Assembly: GCA_964035545.1 (NCBI GenBank)
Contig: CAXIUT010000247.1
Location: 1-12,366 of the forward strand
Reading direction: 5' to 3'
From: Bugula neritina
Taxonomy: Eukaryota > Animalia > Bryozoa
DNA length: 12,366 bases
Every line of letters starts with the position of its first letter. Position 1 is the first letter of the stretch. Below the pieces are notes generated by a model. That model saw nothing but the letters and a program-made list of their open reading frames with translations, searched no databases and was not told the DNA's origin. Both the position numbers and the translations under genes were made by a program. Below, one piece after another: positions 314 to 12,366 of the stretch.

Positions 314-766
314 TCAACTCCATCTTCTCACAGAAGTCAATCTACTTTCTGCTTTTGTAGAATTTGTTTTTAACAATCCATCAAGATATTTTTGATCTTT
401 AATATGATTTATTCTGCTCTCTCCTCTATCTTGTTCATATTTACTCCACATTAACTTTTCCTTCATCATGCAATCTTCTTGAGAATGTTTGATATCATTA
501 ATAAATTTTATTCCTTCCTCTTCTCTTTTATTTCTTGAATCTCTGAGTCCATTTCCAAGAGTTTATGATTTCTAAAGAATCTTTTCAAGACCTAAATAGT
601 TTTTAGAGATACCTTCAGTTGCTTGATTAGCTCTATTATCAGCTCGTCTGCTTGTTCGAAGCAAATCAGTTCCTACATTGAAGATTTATCTATCCAAGTA
701 GGGCACTCTTGAGTATAAAGGAACATAGTGCTGGTATACTCTTTGATCATGGTATTTTCCAAACAT
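314..766 (-). CDS. Hypothetical protein, about 150 aa (UAR=Glu code)
   Basis: The frame runs from ATG at 766 to TGA at 316-314 with no internal TGA: MFGKYHDQRVYQHYVPLYSRVPYLDREIFNVGTDLLRTSRRADNRANQ...KAESRLTSVRRWS*. A second in-frame TGA follows two codons later. No family recognised; start and end are less certain than for the conserved genes. Confidence 0.6.
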
Positions 767-871
767 TTTATTGGAAGTATTCTATCTAAATTAATATTTA
801 TTGAAATCATAAACTTTGATATAAAATTAAATAATAGGCAAACAAATATAAAATAAAGTTTATTGAATCAT

Positions 872-1715
872 TCAATTACTTTCATATACCAAATCGAAAA
901 AGACCAATTTGAACATCAAAAACAAGAAGATTTGAGCTGCTCCAATAATTCCATAAACTATAAAAGCTTTTTTCTACAAATCTTACAAATATTCAGCCAA
1001 GTTGAAAACCAAAAAAGCAATTGAATTGATCATACCATAGATCATCAATATCCAATGAAGCCAAGACCATGGAAAGATACTCAACAAAAAGACAAGAATA
1101 AAGCAACCAAAAGAATATCCATAGATACATACAATCTAAATAATATGATCATTACCTCAGGAAATTTAAGAGTATCACACTTAAGAAATTTGAGTAGAAG
1201 ATACAAAATGGCAGGAATACCAAAACCAATTCCATAGATCAAAACAACTCCATATCTTACAAGTTCCAATTTGAAGATATATTCTGATTTCTACCAGTTG
1301 TAAAAGTATCTAGATAGATTTCCTGTAGAACCAAGAAGGAAAATAATGGTAGTCAGAATCCATAGAGGACCATAGAAGTCAGGATTTTATCTAATCTTTT
1401 CAATGAATTCTTTCTTAATAGGCATAAAGTTAAGTTTGATGCGTTCAACCACTTGCTCCTGACTGACTTGGAAATACTTCTAATAGTATGCCAAACTGCA
1501 GAATCGAGTACAACCTTGCTGTTCCTACTCATGGTTGGATGAAGAGTTGATAGGTGGTTATTGTGGCTGTTAGGATTTCCTTTCCTATACTGTTTAATGA
1601 TCCATCTTGATCGTGCAAAAAGTACTTTGTAGAAGTCTGGCTATTCTGGCTGAGGTCTTTCTTGGGTGCGAGGTGATTGACTCACATCTTATCCATCTAT
1701 GCTGTATTCCTCCAT
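872..1715 (-). CDS. YIPF1: Yip1-domain Golgi membrane protein, YIPF1/YIPF2-like, 267 aa; exons 1715-1626, 1605-1156, 1135-872
   Basis: Translation gives SLAYYEKYFQVSQEQVVERIK...ENPDFYGPLWILTTIIF and PEIVCIYGYSF, matching the YIPF1/2 motifs (NPDLYGPFWI, EIVCVYGYS), plus several hydrophobic segments. Two 20-nt GTA..AG introns restore the frame. Spliced length is 804 nt, ending in TGA at 874-872. Confidence 0.9.
1136..1155 (-). other. 20-nt spliceosomal intron (YIPF intron 2)
   Basis: GTAATGATCATATTATTTAG; removal joins ...KFPE to IVCIYGYS, a conserved motif. Confidence 0.92.
1606..1625 (-). other. 20-nt spliceosomal intron (YIPF intron 1)
   Basis: GTACTTTTTGCACGATCAAG; removal joins the ATG-1715 frame to the Yip1-domain frame. 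It lies in a non-conserved N-terminal region, so support is weaker. Confidence 0.75.
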
Positions 1716-1781
1716 TCAATTTTTAAACTAGTAAATATTATACTCACAGAATTCACATTCAATATCAGATATATCAAACTA

Positions 1782-2705
1782 TCAATATTCCCTACTTGCA
1801 TATTTTGACTTATCTAGTGATTAAAAGTAAGGATGATTCAATGCCTCTTCTGGTGTTATTCTATTCAATGGATCATAATTTAACATTTGCTTCAATAAAT
1901 CGATTCCTTCAGCTGATATTTTACTACATTGGGAATCTAGTTTATTTTCAGTCCATTTAGGAAAAGTTGCCTTGAAGTCTTTGAGATTTACAACTGAAGG
2001 CCAAGTAGTTGGAGTTGGAGTTCCTAATATTTTGAATATTTTGAAAAGTTGATCTATTTCTGAATCTCCACAAAACAAACATCTTTTATGAGCCATCTCA
2101 TAGAAAATACATCCAATCGACCAAGTATCTACAGTTGGATAGTATTTTTCCATTCCCAATAAAATTTATGGAGCTCGATACCAGAGAGTAATAATTTAGT
2201 GAGTATACTCTCTCAAAGGGTAAGTATAGACTCGTGCCAATCCAAAATCAGCTAATTTGATATTCAGAGCCTCTTTGTTTACAAGTATGTTCTGAGGTTT
2301 GAGATCGCGATGAACAATTCTGTTGGCATGACAGTACTAGATTGACAAAAGTAGTTGGTAAATGACAGCTTTTACTTGTTCTTAGTTCATAATGGTCCCT
2401 TAGAGGTACTTTTTGAGATCACAGTCGACATACTCAAAGATAAGATTGAGTTTGTTTTCAGCTGATACGACTTATTTGAGGTCTACAATGTTAGGATGAC
2501 TGAGTTTTTTAAGGAGAGATATCTAGCGAACAGCAGTAGATGGAATTCCTTAATCTTAGTGGTCAAGTCTGATCTTTTTGACTGCCACTATGTCGTTAGT
2601 AATTTTATCTCTAGCCTTATAAACCACTCCATAAGTCCCTTAACCTATTTTGCTGATTCTTTGGTAGCGTTAGACTTCACTTCCACCTGAACTATCAATG
2701 ATCAT
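1782..2705 (-). CDS. CDK1: Cyclin-dependent kinase, CDK1/cdc2-like (PSTAVRE variant), 307 aa, intronless
   Basis: KIG[TAA][17 protein letters not shown], [TAA]D[TAA]GIPSTAVR[TAG][23 protein letters not shown][TAA]IITLWYRAP[TAA][23 protein letters not shown]. Length 924 nt, ATG 2705 to TGA 1784-1782, with 12 in-frame TAR codons. Confidence 0.96.
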
Positions 2706-2898
2706 GATAACGGTCTTGGTAATTAATACTAAAATTATCAGATAGTTATCAATAAAAATCCTTTTAAACTAATAAAAAATTATATTAATACTAAAATTTC
2801 ATAAAAAATAACTCTCAATGGGACCTATTAAAAAAAGATCTCGTTATTTTATCACTATTTAAAATCATCCAAAATATAAGCATCAATGATCAAGAATA

Positions 2899-3930
2899 TC
2901 ATCTTATCATAACTTTTTTTTAAACAATTGATTAAGCAGAATCAGCAACAGAATCTTTTTGTTACCATGAATAGGTATTTTTAGCTTGATATAAATTATG
3001 CATATTTTTACTAAAAGTAAAATCTTTTGGTAATTTATCATTCTGATAGCTTCTTTTCACATTTTATTAAAAAACACTAGACTTATTTCTCACCTCAGGA
3101 GATATATATTTAGACACAAAAACTTGAGAGGAATCAACCATAGATATACTTTTAAAACTTTATGACTTGTATGTATTGATCTTACTCCAATAGATATCCA
3201 TAATCTCTCTAAACTCTTTCAACTAAATACTGCCATTGATTTCTTTTATATTCTCACAGACATCTGACCTTAATAGTTCAAACTATTAGTAATACTGACT
3301 GATTTTACTTTCTTCTTCTCTAATTTTTAACAACTGTTTTTAAATGATATTTTCATGCTATTGTATCTATCTATCATACTTTTTATTTATCTGACATATA
3401 ATTTCCCGCCTCTATTATTCGATATCTTATCTAATTTTAACAAAATTGTTTTATATATGGTACTTTTCTCTGTTAAACACTCCAAATTTATCATTTAAAG
3501 TAGTCAAAATATCCTCACATACTTTCACATATTCTTGAGCCTATGTCAACATTTTTGAACCAACATCATCTTTTTTGACTAAAATTACTTTCCTTCCTTT
3601 ATGATTCAAATCAAAAGCACATTCTTCACAGTAGTAAAAAGGAGATTTGTCAAATTATAGCATATACTTTCCCATCTTCTCCCGATGGTTTATACATTTA
3701 GTAGACACATAACTATTCTTAGTTTAGAAAGAAGGTCGAGTAAAAGTCTTCTTTTGTGATGATTTATCAAATTGTACAGGACGATGACTATTCCGAGGAG
3801 AAAGACTAGGAGATCTCACAATCTATTTCTCTAGTTTAGGCTTACTGTAAAAATGATTGGTTATATTGAGAAGAGGATTTCGTTTCATTTTTGGAGATGG
3901 CTGAGGTTTAAGAAGTTTAATGCCTTTCAT
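2899..3930 (-). CDS. Hypothetical protein, 343 aa, with N-terminal D-box-like motif, degenerate B-box-like Cys/His cluster and coiled coil
   Basis: TGA-free frame from ATG 3930 to TGA 2901-2899, with a backup TGA three codons later. It contains RNPLLNITN (aa17-25), C79xxH82...C101xxC104...H110 (CINH...YYCEECAFDLNHKGRKV), then a charged helical region. Confidence 0.8.
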
Positions 3931-3974
3931 TTGAAATATTATCGTTATTTATAAGAATAAGTATTTATATGAAT

Positions 3975-3980
3975 AAAAAA
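3975..3980 (-). terminator. RNA polymerase III terminator (T6) of the tRNA gene
   Basis: A run of six T on the minus strand immediately follows the tRNA discriminator base. Confidence 0.8.
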
Positions 3981-4052
3981 TATCCTGACAGGGAATCGAA
4001 CCCTGATTAATGGTTTTAGAGACCACTGTTCTAGCCGTTGAACTACCAAGAT
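3981..4052 (-). tRNA. tRNA with CUA anticodon (UAG-decoding), probably tRNA-Glu(CUA)
   Basis: 72-nt cloverleaf on the minus strand: acceptor ATCTTGG/TCAGGAT plus A73; D-arm GTTC-AACGGCTA-GAAC; anticodon arm GTGGT-CT(CTA)AA-ACCAT with the anticodon at 4019-4017; 4-nt variable loop TAAT; T-arm CAGGG-TTCGATT-CCCTG. A and B boxes are intact and there is no intron. The amino-acid identity is inferred. Confidence 0.95.
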
Positions 4053-4377
4053 TTATATTTATATCTGTTTTTAGGAATCAAAATACCACCCCTTTTTCCT
4101 TATACAAATATTTCTAAGTAAATAAGTTTAAAGTATTCTTTAAATGGTTCAATAATCTTATTACAATAATTCTCCAAAATAAAAGAAGAAGAAAATCAAA
4201 TAATTATAAACAGATAAAGTAAATATTATTTATTATTCTTGTAAAATTGATAACTACAAAAATGAAAGATATTTTTTAAAATTCTTTTTATATTATTTCA
4301 TACACTGAAGCTGATAAATGGTGTTTTAATAACAACATTAATAATTTAAAATATTTTATTAATAATCGAATTTACTC

Positions 4378-7057
4378 ATGCGTTTGTCGAACAGCCGTTT
4401 GAGCCACGAAGAACAAGTTAAGGTAGTAGTTCGTCTAAAACCCTAACAGACCTAAAATCCAAAAAATAAATGTGTCTACCTCTCTTAACAATAAAATCAT
4501 CTTGTTGTATAAACAGATCTCAAAAAATAAATATTCGTCTTCGATCACGTAGCCCATCAATTCTCCTCTCAACAAGATATCTACGAAATGATAGGAAAAG
4601 AAGCAGTCACCGCCAGTCTCGAAGTACCTCTCTCGTGATCCAGGGATATAACTGTTGTCTCTTTGCCTACGGACAAACTGGAGCAGGGAAAAGCTACTCC
4701 ATCATGGGAGATATTGTAGAATTACAAATCGATCCCAGTTGTAAAAGCAGAGGTATTATCCCCAGATTGCTATAAGATCTGTTCAGTTCGATTTAGTAAT
4801 CGAAAACTAATTTTTCAGTTATCTGCTCGTACATAGAAATATACAATGAACAGATTTATGATTTGGTACTAATCGAATAATATAGCTTTCGTCTGATAAA
4901 AGAGTTCATCAGATAAGGTAAGATCACAGGAAAGGAGTTTTTGTTGAAGGGACCATAGAGATTAAATTGAATTCTTATCAATAGGCTATTTAGGTTCTTT
5001 TAGAAGGAGATAAAACAAGAAAAATAGCAACCACATCAATGAATAACTAAAGTTCACGCTCACATGTCATCTTCTCAATAGTCATTTAATCGTAAATTCG
5101 ATAAGGATAAGTATACAAAACAAAGAAATCAAAACTCAATATAATTGATTTAGCAGGCAGTTAAAGAGTCAAGTATACAAACGTTGAAGGATAGAGATTA
5201 AGATAAGGTTGTAATATCAATAAATCTTTACATGTGCTTGGAAATGTCATCAATTCTTTAGTTTAATCAACAAAAAAGAAAAAACATATTCCCTATAGAG
5301 ATTCTAAACTTACGTATTTTCTTAAAGATTCTCTTGGAGGTAACTCAATAACCAAGTTATTAGCTAACGTTCACTGCAAAAAAGAATATTATGGAGATAC
5401 TTTATCAACTCTTATGTTTGCTAAGAGAGCTAAAATATTGAAAATGAAGGTATAAGTCAATTAAAATTGTACATAAAATTATTAATCTTTGAGAAATCAA
5501 ATCAAAAAGTTGAGATCTGAGCTAGCTGAAGCTAAATATTTTAGATAAAGTTCAAAAACTTAAGGGACAAGTTTTTATGAACTTGAACCTCAAAATTTAT
5601 AAAGATATACTGAACGTTCAGTATAATCATTACCAAGTACAAGCATCGTCAAAGTTTTCTAATAAAACTAAATCCACTATAAAACACTCATTTAAATGTA
5701 CTAAGAACATATGAAAAATTGTGTCAATATAAATAAAAGAAGAAACAGCATAAATAGAATATAATAATGGAAAAATCTATAAAGAAAAAATATTGCCTTG
5801 ACTAATCTAGTCAAACAATTTCCTAGCTTTACCAGAATATACAAAGAAAATATATTATTGAAACAATAAAGAAATAAAATAGATTAATGTTCAAATTCAA
5901 CTTAAAAATATACCAATAAGAAAGGAAGTACTCAATATACAACCTTTATTTCAATAAAATAACCTTAACAAGAACAAAAATAAGTATCTTTGGAGTAAAT
6001 AATAAAAACATATTAAGATCTAATCGATAATATGAAGACTAAATTTACTTAGCAATTTGATATTCTTGAGAAATCTTATATTTAGTTAGAACAAGACTGC
6101 AACTTAAAAGATAAGAAGGTTAAATAACTTATAAAAAGACAAAATCTTCCTCCAGATATCTAATAATTACAAAATTAAAATTAGTATCTTCAACTAAATA
6201 TATTAAACCTTGAAAATTAGATAAAATAATTATAATAAAATATCAATAAGTTAAATCTCTAAAAAAGTAAAAAACTATTTCATAAAAAAACACACTAAAA
6301 ATAAAGTTTTTATCAAGAATAAGATGATGATCTTGTAAACTATCTATTATAAAAACTTTCATAAATAAAGAAATAAGCATAAGAGGAAGAAAAGATAGCA
6401 AATACTTAAAAATAAAACATGTAAAGTATAATATCTTAACTAAATGCTCACATAGTATCACTTTCTAATTAAAATAATAAATTAAAATCAAAAAATCAAA
6501 GAAGTTTTAGCCAAAGAAAAGAAAAATAACCATAAAAATACCTAGATTAGATCTTTCTTTCAGATAGTAAAAATTTTAGACATAAAAAAATATTTAAAAG
6601 CTAATAACCCATCAACCATTCTGATATCTAATTCAATAACGCACAGTCCAACTTAATCGCCACCTTAAAAATGGAACTCAAAATGAAACAAAAATAGACT
6701 AATAGTCTCAAATAGTAGGTATAAAAATTTGATTTATAAAATAAAAAAGTTGAAGAATAGTTTGGAAAAAATATAAATAATATCATCAAAGAATATAGAT
6801 AAATATATCAAAAACAATTTTCACCACCTCAAATAAAAACAACAAAAAGCATCAGTCGATATAAATAAGAATATTGTCAAAGCATAAAACCTTAAAATAA
6901 AAAATACACCTAAAGATATAACAATAAAAAGTCATCAATCGACAGCAGAGATATCAAAGATAAATAAACTCCTAAAAGCAAAAAGAAAGAAGAATTAAAT
7001 CAAAATGATATTTATAACTATAGTAGTAGTAAAGGCAAGTTTTTTACAACCCGATGA
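4378..7057 (+). CDS. N-terminal-motor kinesin, KIF15/kinesin-12-like, 879 aa; exons 4378-4623, 4644-4865, 4886-7057
   Basis: [34 protein letters not shown] (P-loop), [29 protein letters not shown][TAA][45 protein letters not shown], then a long coiled-coil tail with no TGA until 7055-7057. Spliced length is 2640 nt. The subfamily call rests on IREDxxKGVFV and ANVH and is tentative. Confidence 0.93.
4624..4643 (+). other. 20-nt spliceosomal intron (kinesin intron 1)
   Basis: GTACCTCTCTCGTGATCCAG; removal gives the conserved ...SLE|GYN. Confidence 0.93.
4866..4885 (+). other. 20-nt spliceosomal intron (kinesin intron 2)
   Basis: GTACTAATCGAATAATATAG; removal gives the conserved IYDL|L and restores the motor-domain frame. 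Confidence 0.93.
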
Positions 7058-7106
7058 TCTTTCCTCACTCTTATATATCACTATATTATCCAAAAATATC
7101 TAATCA

Positions 7107-8918
7107 TCAAATAATCGGTTTCCAATCCTTTTTCACTGGCTCATTGTATTTCTTACTTTTAACTGCTTCTCTCTACATCAGCAAAGGCTCACTCTGGTAT
7201 ATATCTTCAAGATTCACTTTAACTTGGTTGTCAGATATTGCTTTAGGATATATTTGCACCTTAGATGATCTACCTAGTTCACAATCTACCCGATTCTTTA
7301 GTATCTAATTGTACTCCTTTTTATTTTTATCAGCTTTTTATTTCTTTTTCTTTTTTATTTATTACTTTTCTATCTTTTATTCTTTATTTTTCTTGATATG
7401 ATTCACATAAGCATCGTACTTTAGAGTAGAATGAGGTTGAATTTTTGGTTCTTAGGTATATTTTCTTACCTTTTTACTTTAAACATGCTCTTATTCATAA
7501 TCCTTATAATATTTATTCAACTGATCTTTAGGTTCACGAGGTTGACTTAAGTTAAAAGGTTTCACTTGGGTTGACTTTCTTTCTTAATATTTATATTACT
7601 CCATTTCAGCCATACCCCTTCGATGGATGTCTTCAAAATTAGGAATAGATTTTTGTTTTTCCACATATTTTTGTTTTGTATATTTCTTTTCTAATTCTAT
7701 ATTTTTTTATTGAATAACTTCAGTATAATTATTAAGATATTTCATTGTTGATGGATAATTTGAAGAATGCAAAAGTTCTAGAGCTCTTTTTTTCTTATCA
7801 TCCTAACTAGCCAATTTAATTTGTTTAGGATTATAAGTTGTTTTTGGAACCTATTTCGGATTAATATTTCTATTTTTATCCCAATTATAATAATCTTCTA
7901 TTTTAATGACATCAGCTTTAGCAGTCAGATTAAAAGGCTATGGTTTTGTCTTTTACATTTGAGATTTAGGCCTTTATTTTGGTTTATCATATGTGCTCTT
8001 TGGGATAGGATTCGCATGAAACTTATTTTATTTTAAATCTTATTCTTTATTATCTGAAGCTATCATTTTATTATTAACTATTTTCTCCTTTATTTCTGGT
8101 TAGTAAGGAATAGTTATTTTTTTATTTAATAATTAATTAATAATTTACCAATCTAGTTCCCTTTATGATTAATTCTTTCCAAGTGAATTGATATTATTTT
8201 TATCAATAATATTATCTTCAAAATCATTTAAATTAAAATATCCATAAAAGAAGATGTTTTTCTTAAGCAAATCCTTGAACTATTTTAATTTTATAGTTCT
8301 TTAATTTTAAGTATTAATATTATAGCATACTCTACTTAAATAGTTTTAGAAGTCCAACCATAGCTAGTCATTACCTATTTTCTTTTTAAGAAGATAGCTA
8401 GAACTTTTAAATAAAATAAATTAACAAAATACCTCATTAAATTACATATTTTTATTTTTCTTATTTAAAATTTATACCAATTTCTATTTGATTTTTTCAT
8501 ATTAATTCTTGTATAATAATTTATTTGCTTTCTCTTAATAGTTATCAACTTTATGATAAGTTTTCATAAATTTCTTCTCTTCCTAAACTCTTCGATTATT
8601 CTATTCTTATTAATTAATATCAATTATTGATTCTTTTTTATTTACACTCACTAATCTTAATATCGATTTTTGTTGCTATTCAACTATCTATCGAGTCTTG
8701 TTCTATTTAGGCAAAGATTGTTAGTATAGCTATTTTAAGTTACCTATTTTTAGTTGAGAAAATAAATCATCATCATTATCGTTTATTGTTGTTTATGACT
8801 CATTATTTTGCTTATGAGGAGGGTGATAGTTTCTAAAGCCAGCAGAATATTCCTTTCTCACGGGCTTTTTCTTGACCTGCTGATAAGTACTTTAATTTTA
8901 GAATTATTAAAGAAACAT
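7107..8918 (-). CDS. FAM161: FAM161 (UPF0564)-like centriole/basal-body microtubule-binding protein, 603 aa
   Basis: TGA-free 1812-nt frame from ATG 8918 to TGA 7109-7107, followed by a second TGA. The C-terminal half has FAM161-type motifs in the expected order: KITIP, KFHANPIP, PEPFNL, PKEVPKTTY, RALELLHSSNYP, IPNFEDIH, TQVKPFNL, PLLMER. The family was recognised from memory of motifs only. Confidence 0.75.
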
Positions 8919-9078
8919 AACTAACTATTATAATCTCAATTAAATAACTTTTCCTTAATTATGTTTATTTTTATCCATATTTAAACTAAAAAAAACTATA
9001 AGAAAGATCAAAGACCTTGAAATTTAACATATTTTTAAAGATCTAATTTTGTATAATAAATAATAATTTAAAAGAGAA

Positions 9079-10335
9079 ATGTAGCCATCTCTTCAACCAA
9101 ATCAAAACCAACAATGTCCATATCTATCCACAATAAAACGCCATTTGCTCGACTTCGATCTCTAGAAGATCTGTTGCATAAGTCTTTCAAACACAAACAT
9201 TTATTCTTGTCTGATATGTGGAAAATATTATCAAGGAAAAAATATTGAATCTCCCCTCTACGAGCACAGCATCGAATTCAATCATCATCTCTTTATCAAC
9301 CTCACAACAAACAAAATATATTGTTAACCCGATAACTACGAAGTACAATCACATACTCTCAATGATATCAAGTTCAATTTACAACCTGTTTATCATAAAA
9401 CTGATCTGGAACTCCTCTATTCGTATCAACAAAAATACAACATAGATGGAAAATCTTATATTCCAGGAATAATTGGTATTAACAACCTAAAAGGTACTGA
9501 CTATGCCAACTGTGTCTTTCAATTATTCAATACAATTAGACCCATCAGATAGTTCTTTTTGCTTGATTAGCACTTCTAAGATCCTTTTCTTTAAAAATAT
9601 AGTATTTTCATAAAGAAGATATGGAACTATCAGCAGTTTAAAGGATCTATCAGTCCACATTAAATAATGCAAACTATTACTGATAAATCTAATAAATTGT
9701 ATAAGATAGGGAAAAAAAGTGATCCCTCTAACTTTATCATCTGGTTCATTGATAACCTTTTTAGGAGTTTGAAAAAATAAAAAAGCAAATTCAATCTTTT
9801 ATCTCTTTTTCAAGGTAATATAAAAACATCCTACATTAAAGGCATTAAAAATTCTGCTTAATATTAAAACTTTCCAACAAAAATAGAGAATAAAAATTTT
9901 ACCATCATAAAACTATAATTTCAAGAAAGAGGTATCTTCAATAAAGTCTAAGATCACGTTGATATCAAAGATATGATGGAATATTACCTTGGATCTAAAG
10001 GAAAGACTCAAGGAGAAGGGCTTTTATATGTTTTGATCACATAGTTTCCTCAATATCTCATTATAGTCTTCAAAAGATTCACTTTCAATGATTATAAAGT
10101 TTAAAAAAATACAAGTCAAGTGATCTACTCAGGCTTTTTGTAAATTTAAGGTCATAAGTATAAGCTAATAGGGCAGATATGTCATCAAGGTAGTGCATAG
10201 AATGGTTCATACAAAGCGTCAGTATGTCATGGAGACAAATGGTTCGAGGCCTAAGATTTGATGATAAGCTAGGTTCTTAAAAAGCAGATGTTACTAGGAG
10301 AACCTTACATTCAGTTGTATTAAAGAATTAATTGA
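9079..10335 (+). CDS. USP39: U4/U6.U5 tri-snRNP-associated protein 2 (USP39/Sad1): ZnF-UBP plus catalytically inactive USP domain, 418 aa
   Basis: CPYLSTIKRHLLDFDL[TAG]KIC, YSCLICGKYYQG, HHLFINL, PDNYE, YIPGIIGINNLKGTDYAN (Asp in place of the catalytic Cys, diagnostic of USP39), KKIWN..FKGSISPH[TAA], KRFTFNDYKV[TAA]KN, YIQLY. ATG 9079 to TGA 10333-10335, no intron needed. Confidence 0.95.
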
Positions 10336-10355
10336 TATCTACTTGTTTATAATTA

Positions 10356-10882
10356 ATGTCGAATTTTAAATTATCAACAAAATTTACCTTTTGGCTTCAA
10401 GAAGGAGATACAGTCAAATACTAACTCTACTCATAAAGTCTTAAAGCAATATCTACTTTCTCAGAAAGCAAGTAGTTCTGGTAATTTTTCCAATTCCTCA
10501 AAAAAACCACTGATCTTCCAAGTATTTATGTTAATATGTAGATTGTGATATGTATCTTTTCAAGTAGGGTTTGAAGCCCTAGTGGTAGGACAAAAGTAAC
10601 GTGGGTGGAGGTTTTTTCAAGATTCGTATATAAAAGAAGCGTTCAAATAAGCTTTGGGAGAACAGTGTATTTAGTATGATAAGTCCAAAAAATAAACATA
10701 TCGATATAATGAATGGAATTAGAATTAAAATTAGATAAAATTATGATTAACTGTAATTATGGATGAATTCCTCAGTTTCAGATAAATAAAAACTATAATC
10801 AATGAAAAACTATATAAAAGAAAATGTACTAATCACAGACTAAAGATCTTTCAATGTCATACCATTCGCATCAAAAAAATGA
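10356..10882 (+). CDS. eIF4E: eIF4E-family cap-binding protein, divergent (class II-like aromatic pattern), 168 aa; exons 10356-10521, 10542-10882
   Basis: LSTKFTFW, TFSESKEFW, DMYLFKEGLKPEW[TAG]DKSNVGGG, KLWEN, GIRIKIR...LELW follow the eIF4E aromatic-residue ladder. One 20-nt intron; spliced length 507 nt; TGA at 10880-10882. Confidence 0.9.
10522..10541 (+). other. 20-nt spliceosomal intron (eIF4E)
   Basis: GTATTTATGTTAATATGTAG; removal joins ...DLP-N to CDMYLFK in frame. Confidence 0.92.
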
Positions 10883-10931: not shown

Positions 10932-12122
10932 TCATCTAAGATGAGATATATTCTAAGCAGTCACTGCTAACCTAGAATTAGTAGACTATATTATTTCTAC
11001 AGACTTATTTTTTCTATCTAGCATTTATCTAGCTTCTTAATCCAATCTAATATAGTTAGCTAGCTATTTTTATATTTCATTATTATTTCTTTAAGCTTCC
11101 ATTATCTACATAAGTATTTTATCAACTCTTTAATTAAGAGATTTATTCTAAGACGATAAAACCTGATGATCATTATACAACCCATCTCGATCCAATATTG
11201 CTGAATCTAAATTATTTTAAACCTTTCTTAACTAACTCTCAAATGTTTTCATAGTTTGAGCCTGCTCCTTATTACCATTCATCATCTTCTGCAAATTGTC
11301 ACTCACCTAGTTATAATCCTCTTGACTTTTAATACACTACCTTTATAGTTTTCTTGTTTTGTCTCGCAAATTGTCTATCTAAATATTTAGAGTTTCTAGT
11401 TTTTTGTATGTAGTATTTACAACATGATCTCTACTTTCAGCTTAATCTAATAACTATATATTTTTAGATCTACATCATTATTATCTTTTTATGCTACAGA
11501 TAAAATACTATGTAATTTATTATTTGCTGCCTATATACTTCTCCCTTATTTCTACAAAGCCTTCAATAATTCCATATTCTACTACAATGATACCACATAT
11601 CTCTAATTTTAAACTTCAATCATATTTCTATCTTATTTATGATTTTTAATCTAAATTCTAAAACATTTACTTTAATAGTTTGATTTTTATTTTACTCATT
11701 TATCTGTTAGTTTTGAGCATTTATCTATTGATTAGATTTTAACAAAGCTCCTATCTAATTCTATTTATTCTAACAACTTCTCTTGATACCTGTATTGTCC
11801 CTCAGTATCTCTTCGAATTGAACTGATAATCTATGAATTTGCATCTTTATATTATCACTCTCAGTTCTCAATTCAAGAATATTCTTTCTATTAATCTACA
11901 ACTTAATTCTATGTATAATTAAAGTTACTTTTGTTCGCTTTATATTCTTTACCTTTCATCAGCTAACATATCATACTTTGATTCAATATTATTCACCTAA
12001 TTTTCTAAAGGAATATATTAATGCTCTTTATCTTTCAAATCGTAGAGCTATTTTTTCAAGGATGCGATCAATGACTCTTTTTGATTATTTTCAATTTGTT
12101 CACTATTATTTCCTCTGTACAT
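10932..12122 (-). CDS. Coiled-coil protein of unknown function, 376 aa; exons 12122-11929, 11908-11671, 11650-11474, 11453-10932
   Basis: MYRGNNSEQ...KESLIASLKKELYDLKDKEHEY...ELANYIRLDEEAREMLDRKNKSV...HLR*. Heptad-like, E/K/N-rich throughout. Three 20-nt GTA..AG introns sit where the TGA-free frame switches. Spliced length is 1131 nt. Confidence 0.85.
11454..11473 (-). other. 20-nt spliceosomal intron (coiled-coil gene intron 3)
   Basis: GTAGATCTAAAAATATATAG; the downstream frame has a TGA just upstream of this point, so a frame switch is required here. Confidence 0.85.
11651..11670 (-). other. 20-nt spliceosomal intron (coiled-coil gene intron 2)
   Basis: GTAAATGTTTTAGAATTTAG, located at a required frame switch. 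Confidence 0.85.
11909..11928 (-). other. 20-nt spliceosomal intron (coiled-coil gene intron 1)
   Basis: GTAACTTTAATTATACATAG, located at a required frame switch. Confidence 0.85.
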
Positions 12123-12210: not shown

Positions 12211-12366
12211 GGGGTTGGGGTTGGGGTTGGGGTTGGGGTTGGGGTTGGGGTTGGGGTTGGGGTTGGGGTTGGGGTTGGGGTTGGGGTTGGGGTTGGGGTT
12301 GGGGGGGTTGGGGTTGGGGTTGGGGTTGGGGTTGGGGTTGGGGTTGGGGTTGGGGTTGGGGTTGGG
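12211..12366. repeat. Right telomere, (GGGGTT)n
   Basis: Tandem GGGGTT from 12211 to the end, the reverse complement of the left-end repeat. Confidence 0.98.

Follow-up and report, generated by a model that had tools for sequence, protein, structure and literature searches.

Gene content and codon usage of the chromosome

The window analysed here, a stretch of 12,366 nt, is the contig CAXIUT010000247.1 in an assembly deposited for Bugula neritina (GCA_964035545.1). It contains nine protein genes and one tRNA gene and, judged from its sequence, is with little doubt a complete linear macronuclear mini-chromosome of a ciliate in which TAA and TAG are both ordinary glutamate codons and TGA is the sole stop. 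Direct reading shows a 5' telomere of (CCCCAA)n in which a few units are irregular (1-74) and a 3' telomere of (GGGGTT)n (12211-12366), and this start and end together indicate that the macronuclear chromosome is complete. The GC content ranges from 21 to 35% along the window. Both strands contain long open frames if TGA alone is treated as a stop; under the standard code, none of the stop-free pieces in the genes examined exceeds 114 codons. The minus strand encodes an unknown protein, a multi-pass membrane protein, a CDK1/2-type kinase, a Cys-rich coiled-coil protein, the tRNA, a long Lys/Glu-rich protein and a coiled-coil protein, and the plus strand encodes a kinesin, a USP39/Sad1-type protein and eIF4E.

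Four of these genes could be assigned to known protein families. The CDK gene (1782-2705, minus strand; TGA 1784-1782) has 10 TAA and 2 TAG codons in frame, and its product matched CDK1/2/3 structures in the PDB with E values of about 1e-37. The kinesin gene (4318-7057, plus strand; TGA 7055-7057) is interrupted by two introns (4624-4643 and 4866-4885) and contains 79 TAA and 13 TAG codons; the nearest solved structure is KIF15. The gene for the USP39/Sad1-type tri-snRNP protein (9079-10335, plus strand; TGA 10333-10335) has 14 TAA and 7 TAG codons and encodes a zf-UBP domain (Pfam, 5e-13), and its orthologue in the related locus L002, described below, matched USP39/Sad1 in the PDB. The eIF4E gene (10356-10882, plus strand; TGA 10880-10882), with 10 TAA and 4 TAG codons and a phase-1 intron at 10522-10541, is nearest to the solved structure of 4EHP/eIF4E2. 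Just 20 nt separate the stop of the USP39 gene from the start of the eIF4E gene.

The longest stop-free piece of the CDK gene was used in a word search for relatives of the chromosome, which recovered fragments 67-88% identical to it in JGI, ENA, NCBI and Logan assemblies; several of these CDK fragments read straight through with E opposite a TAA of the window. The loci compared were L001 (NCBI GCA_041156805.1), L002/L003 (Logan), L004 (ENA), and L005 and L006 (both Logan). The closest relative was L001, with 87.7% DNA identity and 89% amino-acid identity to the window. L002, which runs in the opposite orientation, is syntenic with positions 319-10882 and shares 65-72% DNA identity with them, so that codons could be compared gene by gene. 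In-frame TAA or TAG codons (hereafter TAR, or UAR in RNA) were present in the genes of L001, L002 and L004 themselves, and L005 and L006 had GAA/GAG or Asp opposite the TAR codons of the window.

The gene models of the window contain about 176 TAA, 60 TAG, 107 GAA and 37 GAG codons in roughly 3,370 codons, and no in-frame TGA once a mis-framed model of the Cys-rich/coiled-coil gene is set aside. About 236 in-frame TAR codons without an in-frame TGA is far beyond chance. All nine protein genes end in TGA, as an earlier note on this DNA had stated. TAR codons account for about 62% of the glutamate codons in the window, TAA being the commonest, and for about 38% of the aligned glutamate codons in L002, a locus with 38% GC compared with the 21-35% of the window. 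Four genes (kinesin, USP39, eIF4E and CDK) were checked at their ends: window and L002 share the homologous final codon of the open frame, and each alignment continues up to the codon that precedes TGA in the two species.

TAA and TAG at conserved glutamate positions

The earlier note, made from the letters of the window, had proposed that TAA and TAG encode glutamate and are neither stop nor glutamine codons. It had cited eight TAR codons in four proteins, all of which lie where it placed them: TAA at 2642-2640, 2198-2196 and 2168-2166 in the CDK gene (minus strand), at 5162-5164 in the kinesin gene and at 9661-9663 in the USP39 gene, and TAG at 2525-2523 in the CDK gene, 9163-9165 in the USP39 gene and 10586-10588 in the eIF4E gene. 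The conserved glutamine positions that it had listed for comparison do have CAG or CAA.

The CDK gene allowed these positions to be compared with homologues from outside the group. A second word search, with a 190-residue fragment of a relative, led to full-length CDK1/2 homologues in Paramecium and in plants, fungi and animals, 100 of which were aligned with the CDK of the window. The TAG at 2525-2523, in the PSTAVRE motif, and the TAA at 2198, in THE, stood opposite Glu in 100/100 homologues. Glu was also the residue in 99/100 at the TAA at 2168 (APE), in 98/100 at the TAA at 2552, in 90/100 at the TAA at 2642 (GEGTYG) and in 88/100 at the TAA at 2558. At three other TAA codons the homologues had Glu in 51 and Asp in 30 of 100 cases (2672), Asp in 71 and Glu in 26 (2402), and Asp in 83 (2474). 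None of the TAR sites in the CDK gene favoured Gln or Lys.

For the other proteins, stop-free pieces of L002 with GAA/GAG opposite TAR codons of the window were compared with outside homologues. The TAA at 5162-5164 in the kinesin gene lies in the switch II motif, read as DLAGS-TAA-R, and L002 has GAA/GAG at the glutamates of DLAGSE, IRED and NxESSRSH; its IRED, NSESSRSH and DLAGSER align to LREH, NRESSRSH and DLAGSER of KIF15. In eIF4E, the FRDGLKPEWED of L002 aligns to FKEGIKPMWED of eIF4E2/4EHP, and in the window TAG occupies the first three of the acidic/variable positions of this alignment. At W-TAG-D (10586-10588), L002 has GAR, which is aligned to the Glu of WED in 4EHP. The two cited USP39 sites face TAR codons in L002 as well, the TAG at 9163-9165 being opposite TAG and the TAA at 9661-9663 opposite TAG; this is consistent with Glu but does not discriminate it from other residues at these two sites.

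Codon-by-codon comparison with related loci

The TGA-delimited frames of the window were aligned to L002 with every TAR masked as X, so that the alignment could not favour any residue, and the codons were then read back. The 171 aligned TAA codons of the window stood opposite Glu in 65 cases, TAA in 31, TAG in 17, Asp in 10, Gln in 9, Gly in 7 and Lys in 7, and the 58 aligned TAG codons stood opposite Glu in 24, TAG in 13, Asp in 8, Gln in 5 and TAA in 3. The partners of the 111 GAA codons were Glu (59), TAA (15), TAG (11) and Gln (8), and GAA and GAG shared the partner profile of TAR. In the same alignments, CAA/CAG paired with Gln, AAA/AAG with Lys and TAT/TAC with Tyr, and for 61/61 sense codons the most frequent partner in L002 was the standard residue. 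In L001, 19/19 aligned TAR codons of the window were opposite TAA, TAG, GAA or GAG only, and L004, L005 and L006 agreed.

These alignments were also used for a log-likelihood test, in which an empirical substitution table derived from them was applied to the 165 TAR codons opposite sense codons. Glu was the best assignment for both codons, with Asp 103 nats and Gln 135 nats worse for TAA, and Asp 27 nats and Gln 51 nats worse for TAG. The TAR codons of L002 itself likewise had Glu as the preferred residue. Thus, the assignment made in the earlier note is borne out by the codon alignment, by the likelihoods and by the outside CDK homologues.

The assignment of UAR to glutamine, as in the common ciliate code (translation table 6), has in its favour that 9/171 TAA and 5/58 TAG codons were opposite Gln in L002, but GAA was opposite Gln at the same rate (8/111). 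Considering also the likelihood deficits of 135 nats for TAA and 51 nats for TAG, the 88-100% Glu at TAA/TAG sites in the CDK homologues and the use of CAA/CAG at conserved glutamine sites, we regard glutamine as an extremely improbable reading. Tyrosine (table 29, the Mesodinium code) was rejected, since only 3/171 TAA and 1/58 TAG codons were opposite Tyr. A split code such as that of Oligohymenophorea sp. PL0344, with UAA as Lys and UAG as Glu, would accommodate the 7/171 TAA codons opposite Lys and can otherwise be given next to no weight: Lys was outside the five best candidates for TAA, TAA occurs at the glutamates of GEGTYG, THE, APE and DLAGSE, and TAA and TAG interchange freely between orthologues (17 and 3 cases).

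Some observations weigh against a uniform glutamate reading or add nothing to it. Three of the 12 in-frame TAR sites in the CDK gene fall in variable columns and are uninformative. A minority of TAR codons were opposite Gln, Lys or Gly, at rates like those of GAA/GAG, and there may be low-level ambiguous decoding of TAR.

A candidate tRNA for UAG and UAA

A tRNA gene with the anticodon CUA lies on the minus strand at 3981-4052. It was folded into a cloverleaf by ARAGORN and scored 62.2 bits with the Rfam tRNA model. The gene contains a B-box-like GGTTCGATTCC and is directly followed at its 3' side by a T6 run of the RNA polymerase III type. At the orthologous position of L002 (8265-8336, plus strand) there is a tRNA with the anticodon UUA; this predicted orthologue of the tRNA(CUA) is new in this analysis. 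CUA pairs with UAG, and UUA pairs with UAA and, by wobble, with UAG. The two tRNA sequences differ at 13/72 positions, with 21/21 stem pairs kept in both, and compensatory changes were found in three pairs (1:72, A-U to G-C; 28:42, U-A to C-G; 31:39, U-A to A-U). In the controls for this pair, slid sequences gave no pairing, and the shuffle control gave 52/500, which is weak with two sequences only.

That the anticodon is CUA in the window and UUA in the orthologous tRNA of a sister species fits UAA and UAG having the same meaning and argues against the split code. The switch may represent a lineage-specific retuning of the set of decoders to TAA/TAG usage. The species with the CUA tRNA is the more AT-rich one, with TAA used about three times as often as TAG.

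From the codon evidence, we infer that both tRNAs carry glutamate. Features that we take to resemble those of animal tRNA-Glu are the discriminator A73, the GGGTTCGATTCCC T-arm and an acceptor stem of the form xxCYUGG...UCAGGxx that includes a G7-U66 pair; A38 in the anticodon loop is presumably tRNA-Gln-like. A scan of metagenomes with the exact 23-nt 3' half of the tRNA gave no match. A degenerate scan of viral contigs with the 3' half returned six tRNA-Glu(CTC) and one tRNA-Cys, bacterial-type in appearance, and does not amount to a fair isotype test. A scan of metagenomes with the D-arm mostly returned bacterial-looking tRNA-Arg(CCT), in a panel that was biased in that it had been selected on the pattern itself. 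L074, a contig labelled as human-gut metagenome, was included in the two batch tRNA scans (ARAGORN, and tRNA extraction with identity ranking); none of the contigs was judged to be human DNA. No further tRNA was found along the contig of a relative (L137, L138).

A tRNA(UUA) at 10789-10861 of a metagenome contig (L044) was considered as a third member of the family and dropped, the contig being phage-like, with a sigma-70-type gene and standard-code open reading frames. Its first 25 nt match the tRNA of the window at 24 positions and its 3' half is different; this likeness probably reflects convergence on a common D-arm type.

Glutamate could also enter the proteins by another route, namely by U-to-G editing of the mRNA, which would convert TAA/TAG to GAA/GAG and leave the translation apparatus standard or as in table 6. 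Of the runs that contain this DNA, none is recorded as RNA. A conserved tRNA gene with the anticodon CUA or UUA on the same chromosome, with its stems kept and a T-run at its end, would serve no purpose if UAR codons were absent from the translated mRNA, and UAR codons of peritrichs are present in transcriptome assemblies (PMC5062323). We therefore consider editing highly unlikely. Under the glutamate reading, the tRNAs that read UAA and UAG would be charged with glutamate by GluRS, and the eRF1 of the organism would recognise UGA only.

Other genes and the syntenic locus in relatives

The remaining protein genes also read through TAA and TAG to a TGA. Gene A, for the unknown protein (314-811, minus strand; TGA 316-314), has 3 TAA and 2 TAG codons in frame; its start is not fixed, and its TGA-delimited frame is conserved with L002. 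The gene for the multi-pass membrane protein (872-1743, minus strand; TGA 874-872) has 7 TAA and 5 TAG codons and an intron at 1136-1155 and is conserved in L001, L002 and L004; the protein looks Yip1-like by eye only. The gene for the Cys-rich and coiled-coil protein, B-box-like by eye (2899-3930, minus strand; TGA 2901-2899), reads through TAA/TAG, and its frame is conserved with L002 at 39% identity. The long Lys/Glu-rich protein, of a family that was not recognised, is encoded at 7107-8933 on the minus strand (TGA 7109-7107; start not fixed) with 36 TAA and 15 TAG codons, and its alignment to L002 extends over 616 codons at 47% identity and reaches the stop. The last gene, for a coiled-coil protein (10932-12090, minus strand; TGA 10934-10932; upstream boundary approximate), spans several frames and thus has introns; its last exon alone contains 8 TAA and 10 TAG codons. 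DNA homology to L138 extends to position 12073 of the window. A Pfam search of the short stop-free pieces gave no match for five genes, including Gene A (longest piece) and the Cys-rich protein, and the names used for these five are by eye only.

The intron of the membrane-protein gene, the two of the kinesin gene and that of the eIF4E gene, the four checked, are all exactly 20 nt long with GT..AG ends. The intergenic spacers are very short throughout the chromosome; the membrane-protein and CDK genes, for instance, lie about 40 nt apart.

In a related species, the syntenic region is internal to contigs of 29-42 kb (L137, L138), which continue for at least 18 kb past the position of the left telomere of the window and at least 8 kb past that of the right one. 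No telomere repeats were found in the fetched parts of L137 and L138. The sites of chromosome breakage seem to differ between the two species.

The chromosome itself was also found in other material. DNA runs from three studies under three organism labels yielded contigs 95-100% identical to it (window 1700-7600), whose differences were mostly transitions and in no case fell in a TAR codon. A comparison of four DNA runs for differences between strains yielded near-identical contigs without a TAR-codon variant, which gives no test of the code.

Relationship to known codes and the source organism

As read from these alignments, the code of the window is NCBI translation table 30, the peritrich nuclear code, and is thus already known. 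The earlier note had named the same table and set it apart from the UAR=Gln code, and this holds: all the codon assignments of table 30 were found, namely TAA and TAG as Glu, TGA as the only stop and the other codons standard, with no difference in the code. The first report of TAA/TAG as Glu in peritrichs was that of Sanchez-Silva et al. 2003, according to PMC4967479, where the work is cited. The same assignment was inferred from transcriptomes for Campanella and Carchesium (PMC5062323), UAR=Glu has been described as arising once, in Peritrichia (PMC10553269), and the peritrich genomes of Vorticella campanula, Epistylis hentscheli and Campanella sinica are already in comparative work (PMC13685798). 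What goes beyond the reports of table 30 is that the chromosome also carries a cognate tRNA(CUA) gene, whose orthologue in a relative has the anticodon UUA.

Among the other ciliate codes, table 6, used by Tetrahymena, Paramecium and Oxytricha, shares with the window the sense use of TAA and TAG, TGA as the only stop, a ciliate host and C4A2 telomeres, but the two codons specify Gln there and Glu in the window. PL0344 (PMC10553269) has UAG as Glu, UGA as the only stop and tRNA(CUA) genes that resemble tRNA-Glu; it differs in using UAA for Lys, whereas in the window UAA is Glu, and UAA/UAG as well as the CUA/UUA anticodons are interchangeable between orthologues.

No rRNA is present in the window. 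The source organism is very probably a peritrich, as indicated by the C4A2 telomeres, by Paramecium having the closest named CDK and by the occurrence of related lineages across environmental assemblies. Alternatively, the same UAR=Glu code could have arisen independently in another ciliate lineage. The Oligohymenophorea do hold several codes, one of them with UAG=Glu outside the peritrichs (PMC10553269); however, all the UAR=Glu ciliates described so far are peritrichs (PMC5062323, PMC10553269), and the clade with the code of the window is diverse and common in environmental assemblies, as peritrichs are. The C4A2 telomeres and the closest named CDK, that of the oligohymenophorean Paramecium, fit Oligohymenophorea. 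On balance, we consider an independent origin unlikely.

The result is confirmatory, documenting table 30 on a complete chromosome on which TAR codons make up the majority of glutamate codons. Annotation of this genome presupposes knowledge of its code: under the standard code or table 6, every protein would be truncated or would have Gln at catalytic Glu positions, among them the glutamates of GEGTYG, PSTAIRE and APE, of kinesin switch II and of the WED of eIF4E. The tRNA(CUA)/tRNA(UUA) pair is a candidate decoder of these codons and would lend itself to studies of how GluRS comes to accept anticodons that end in A.

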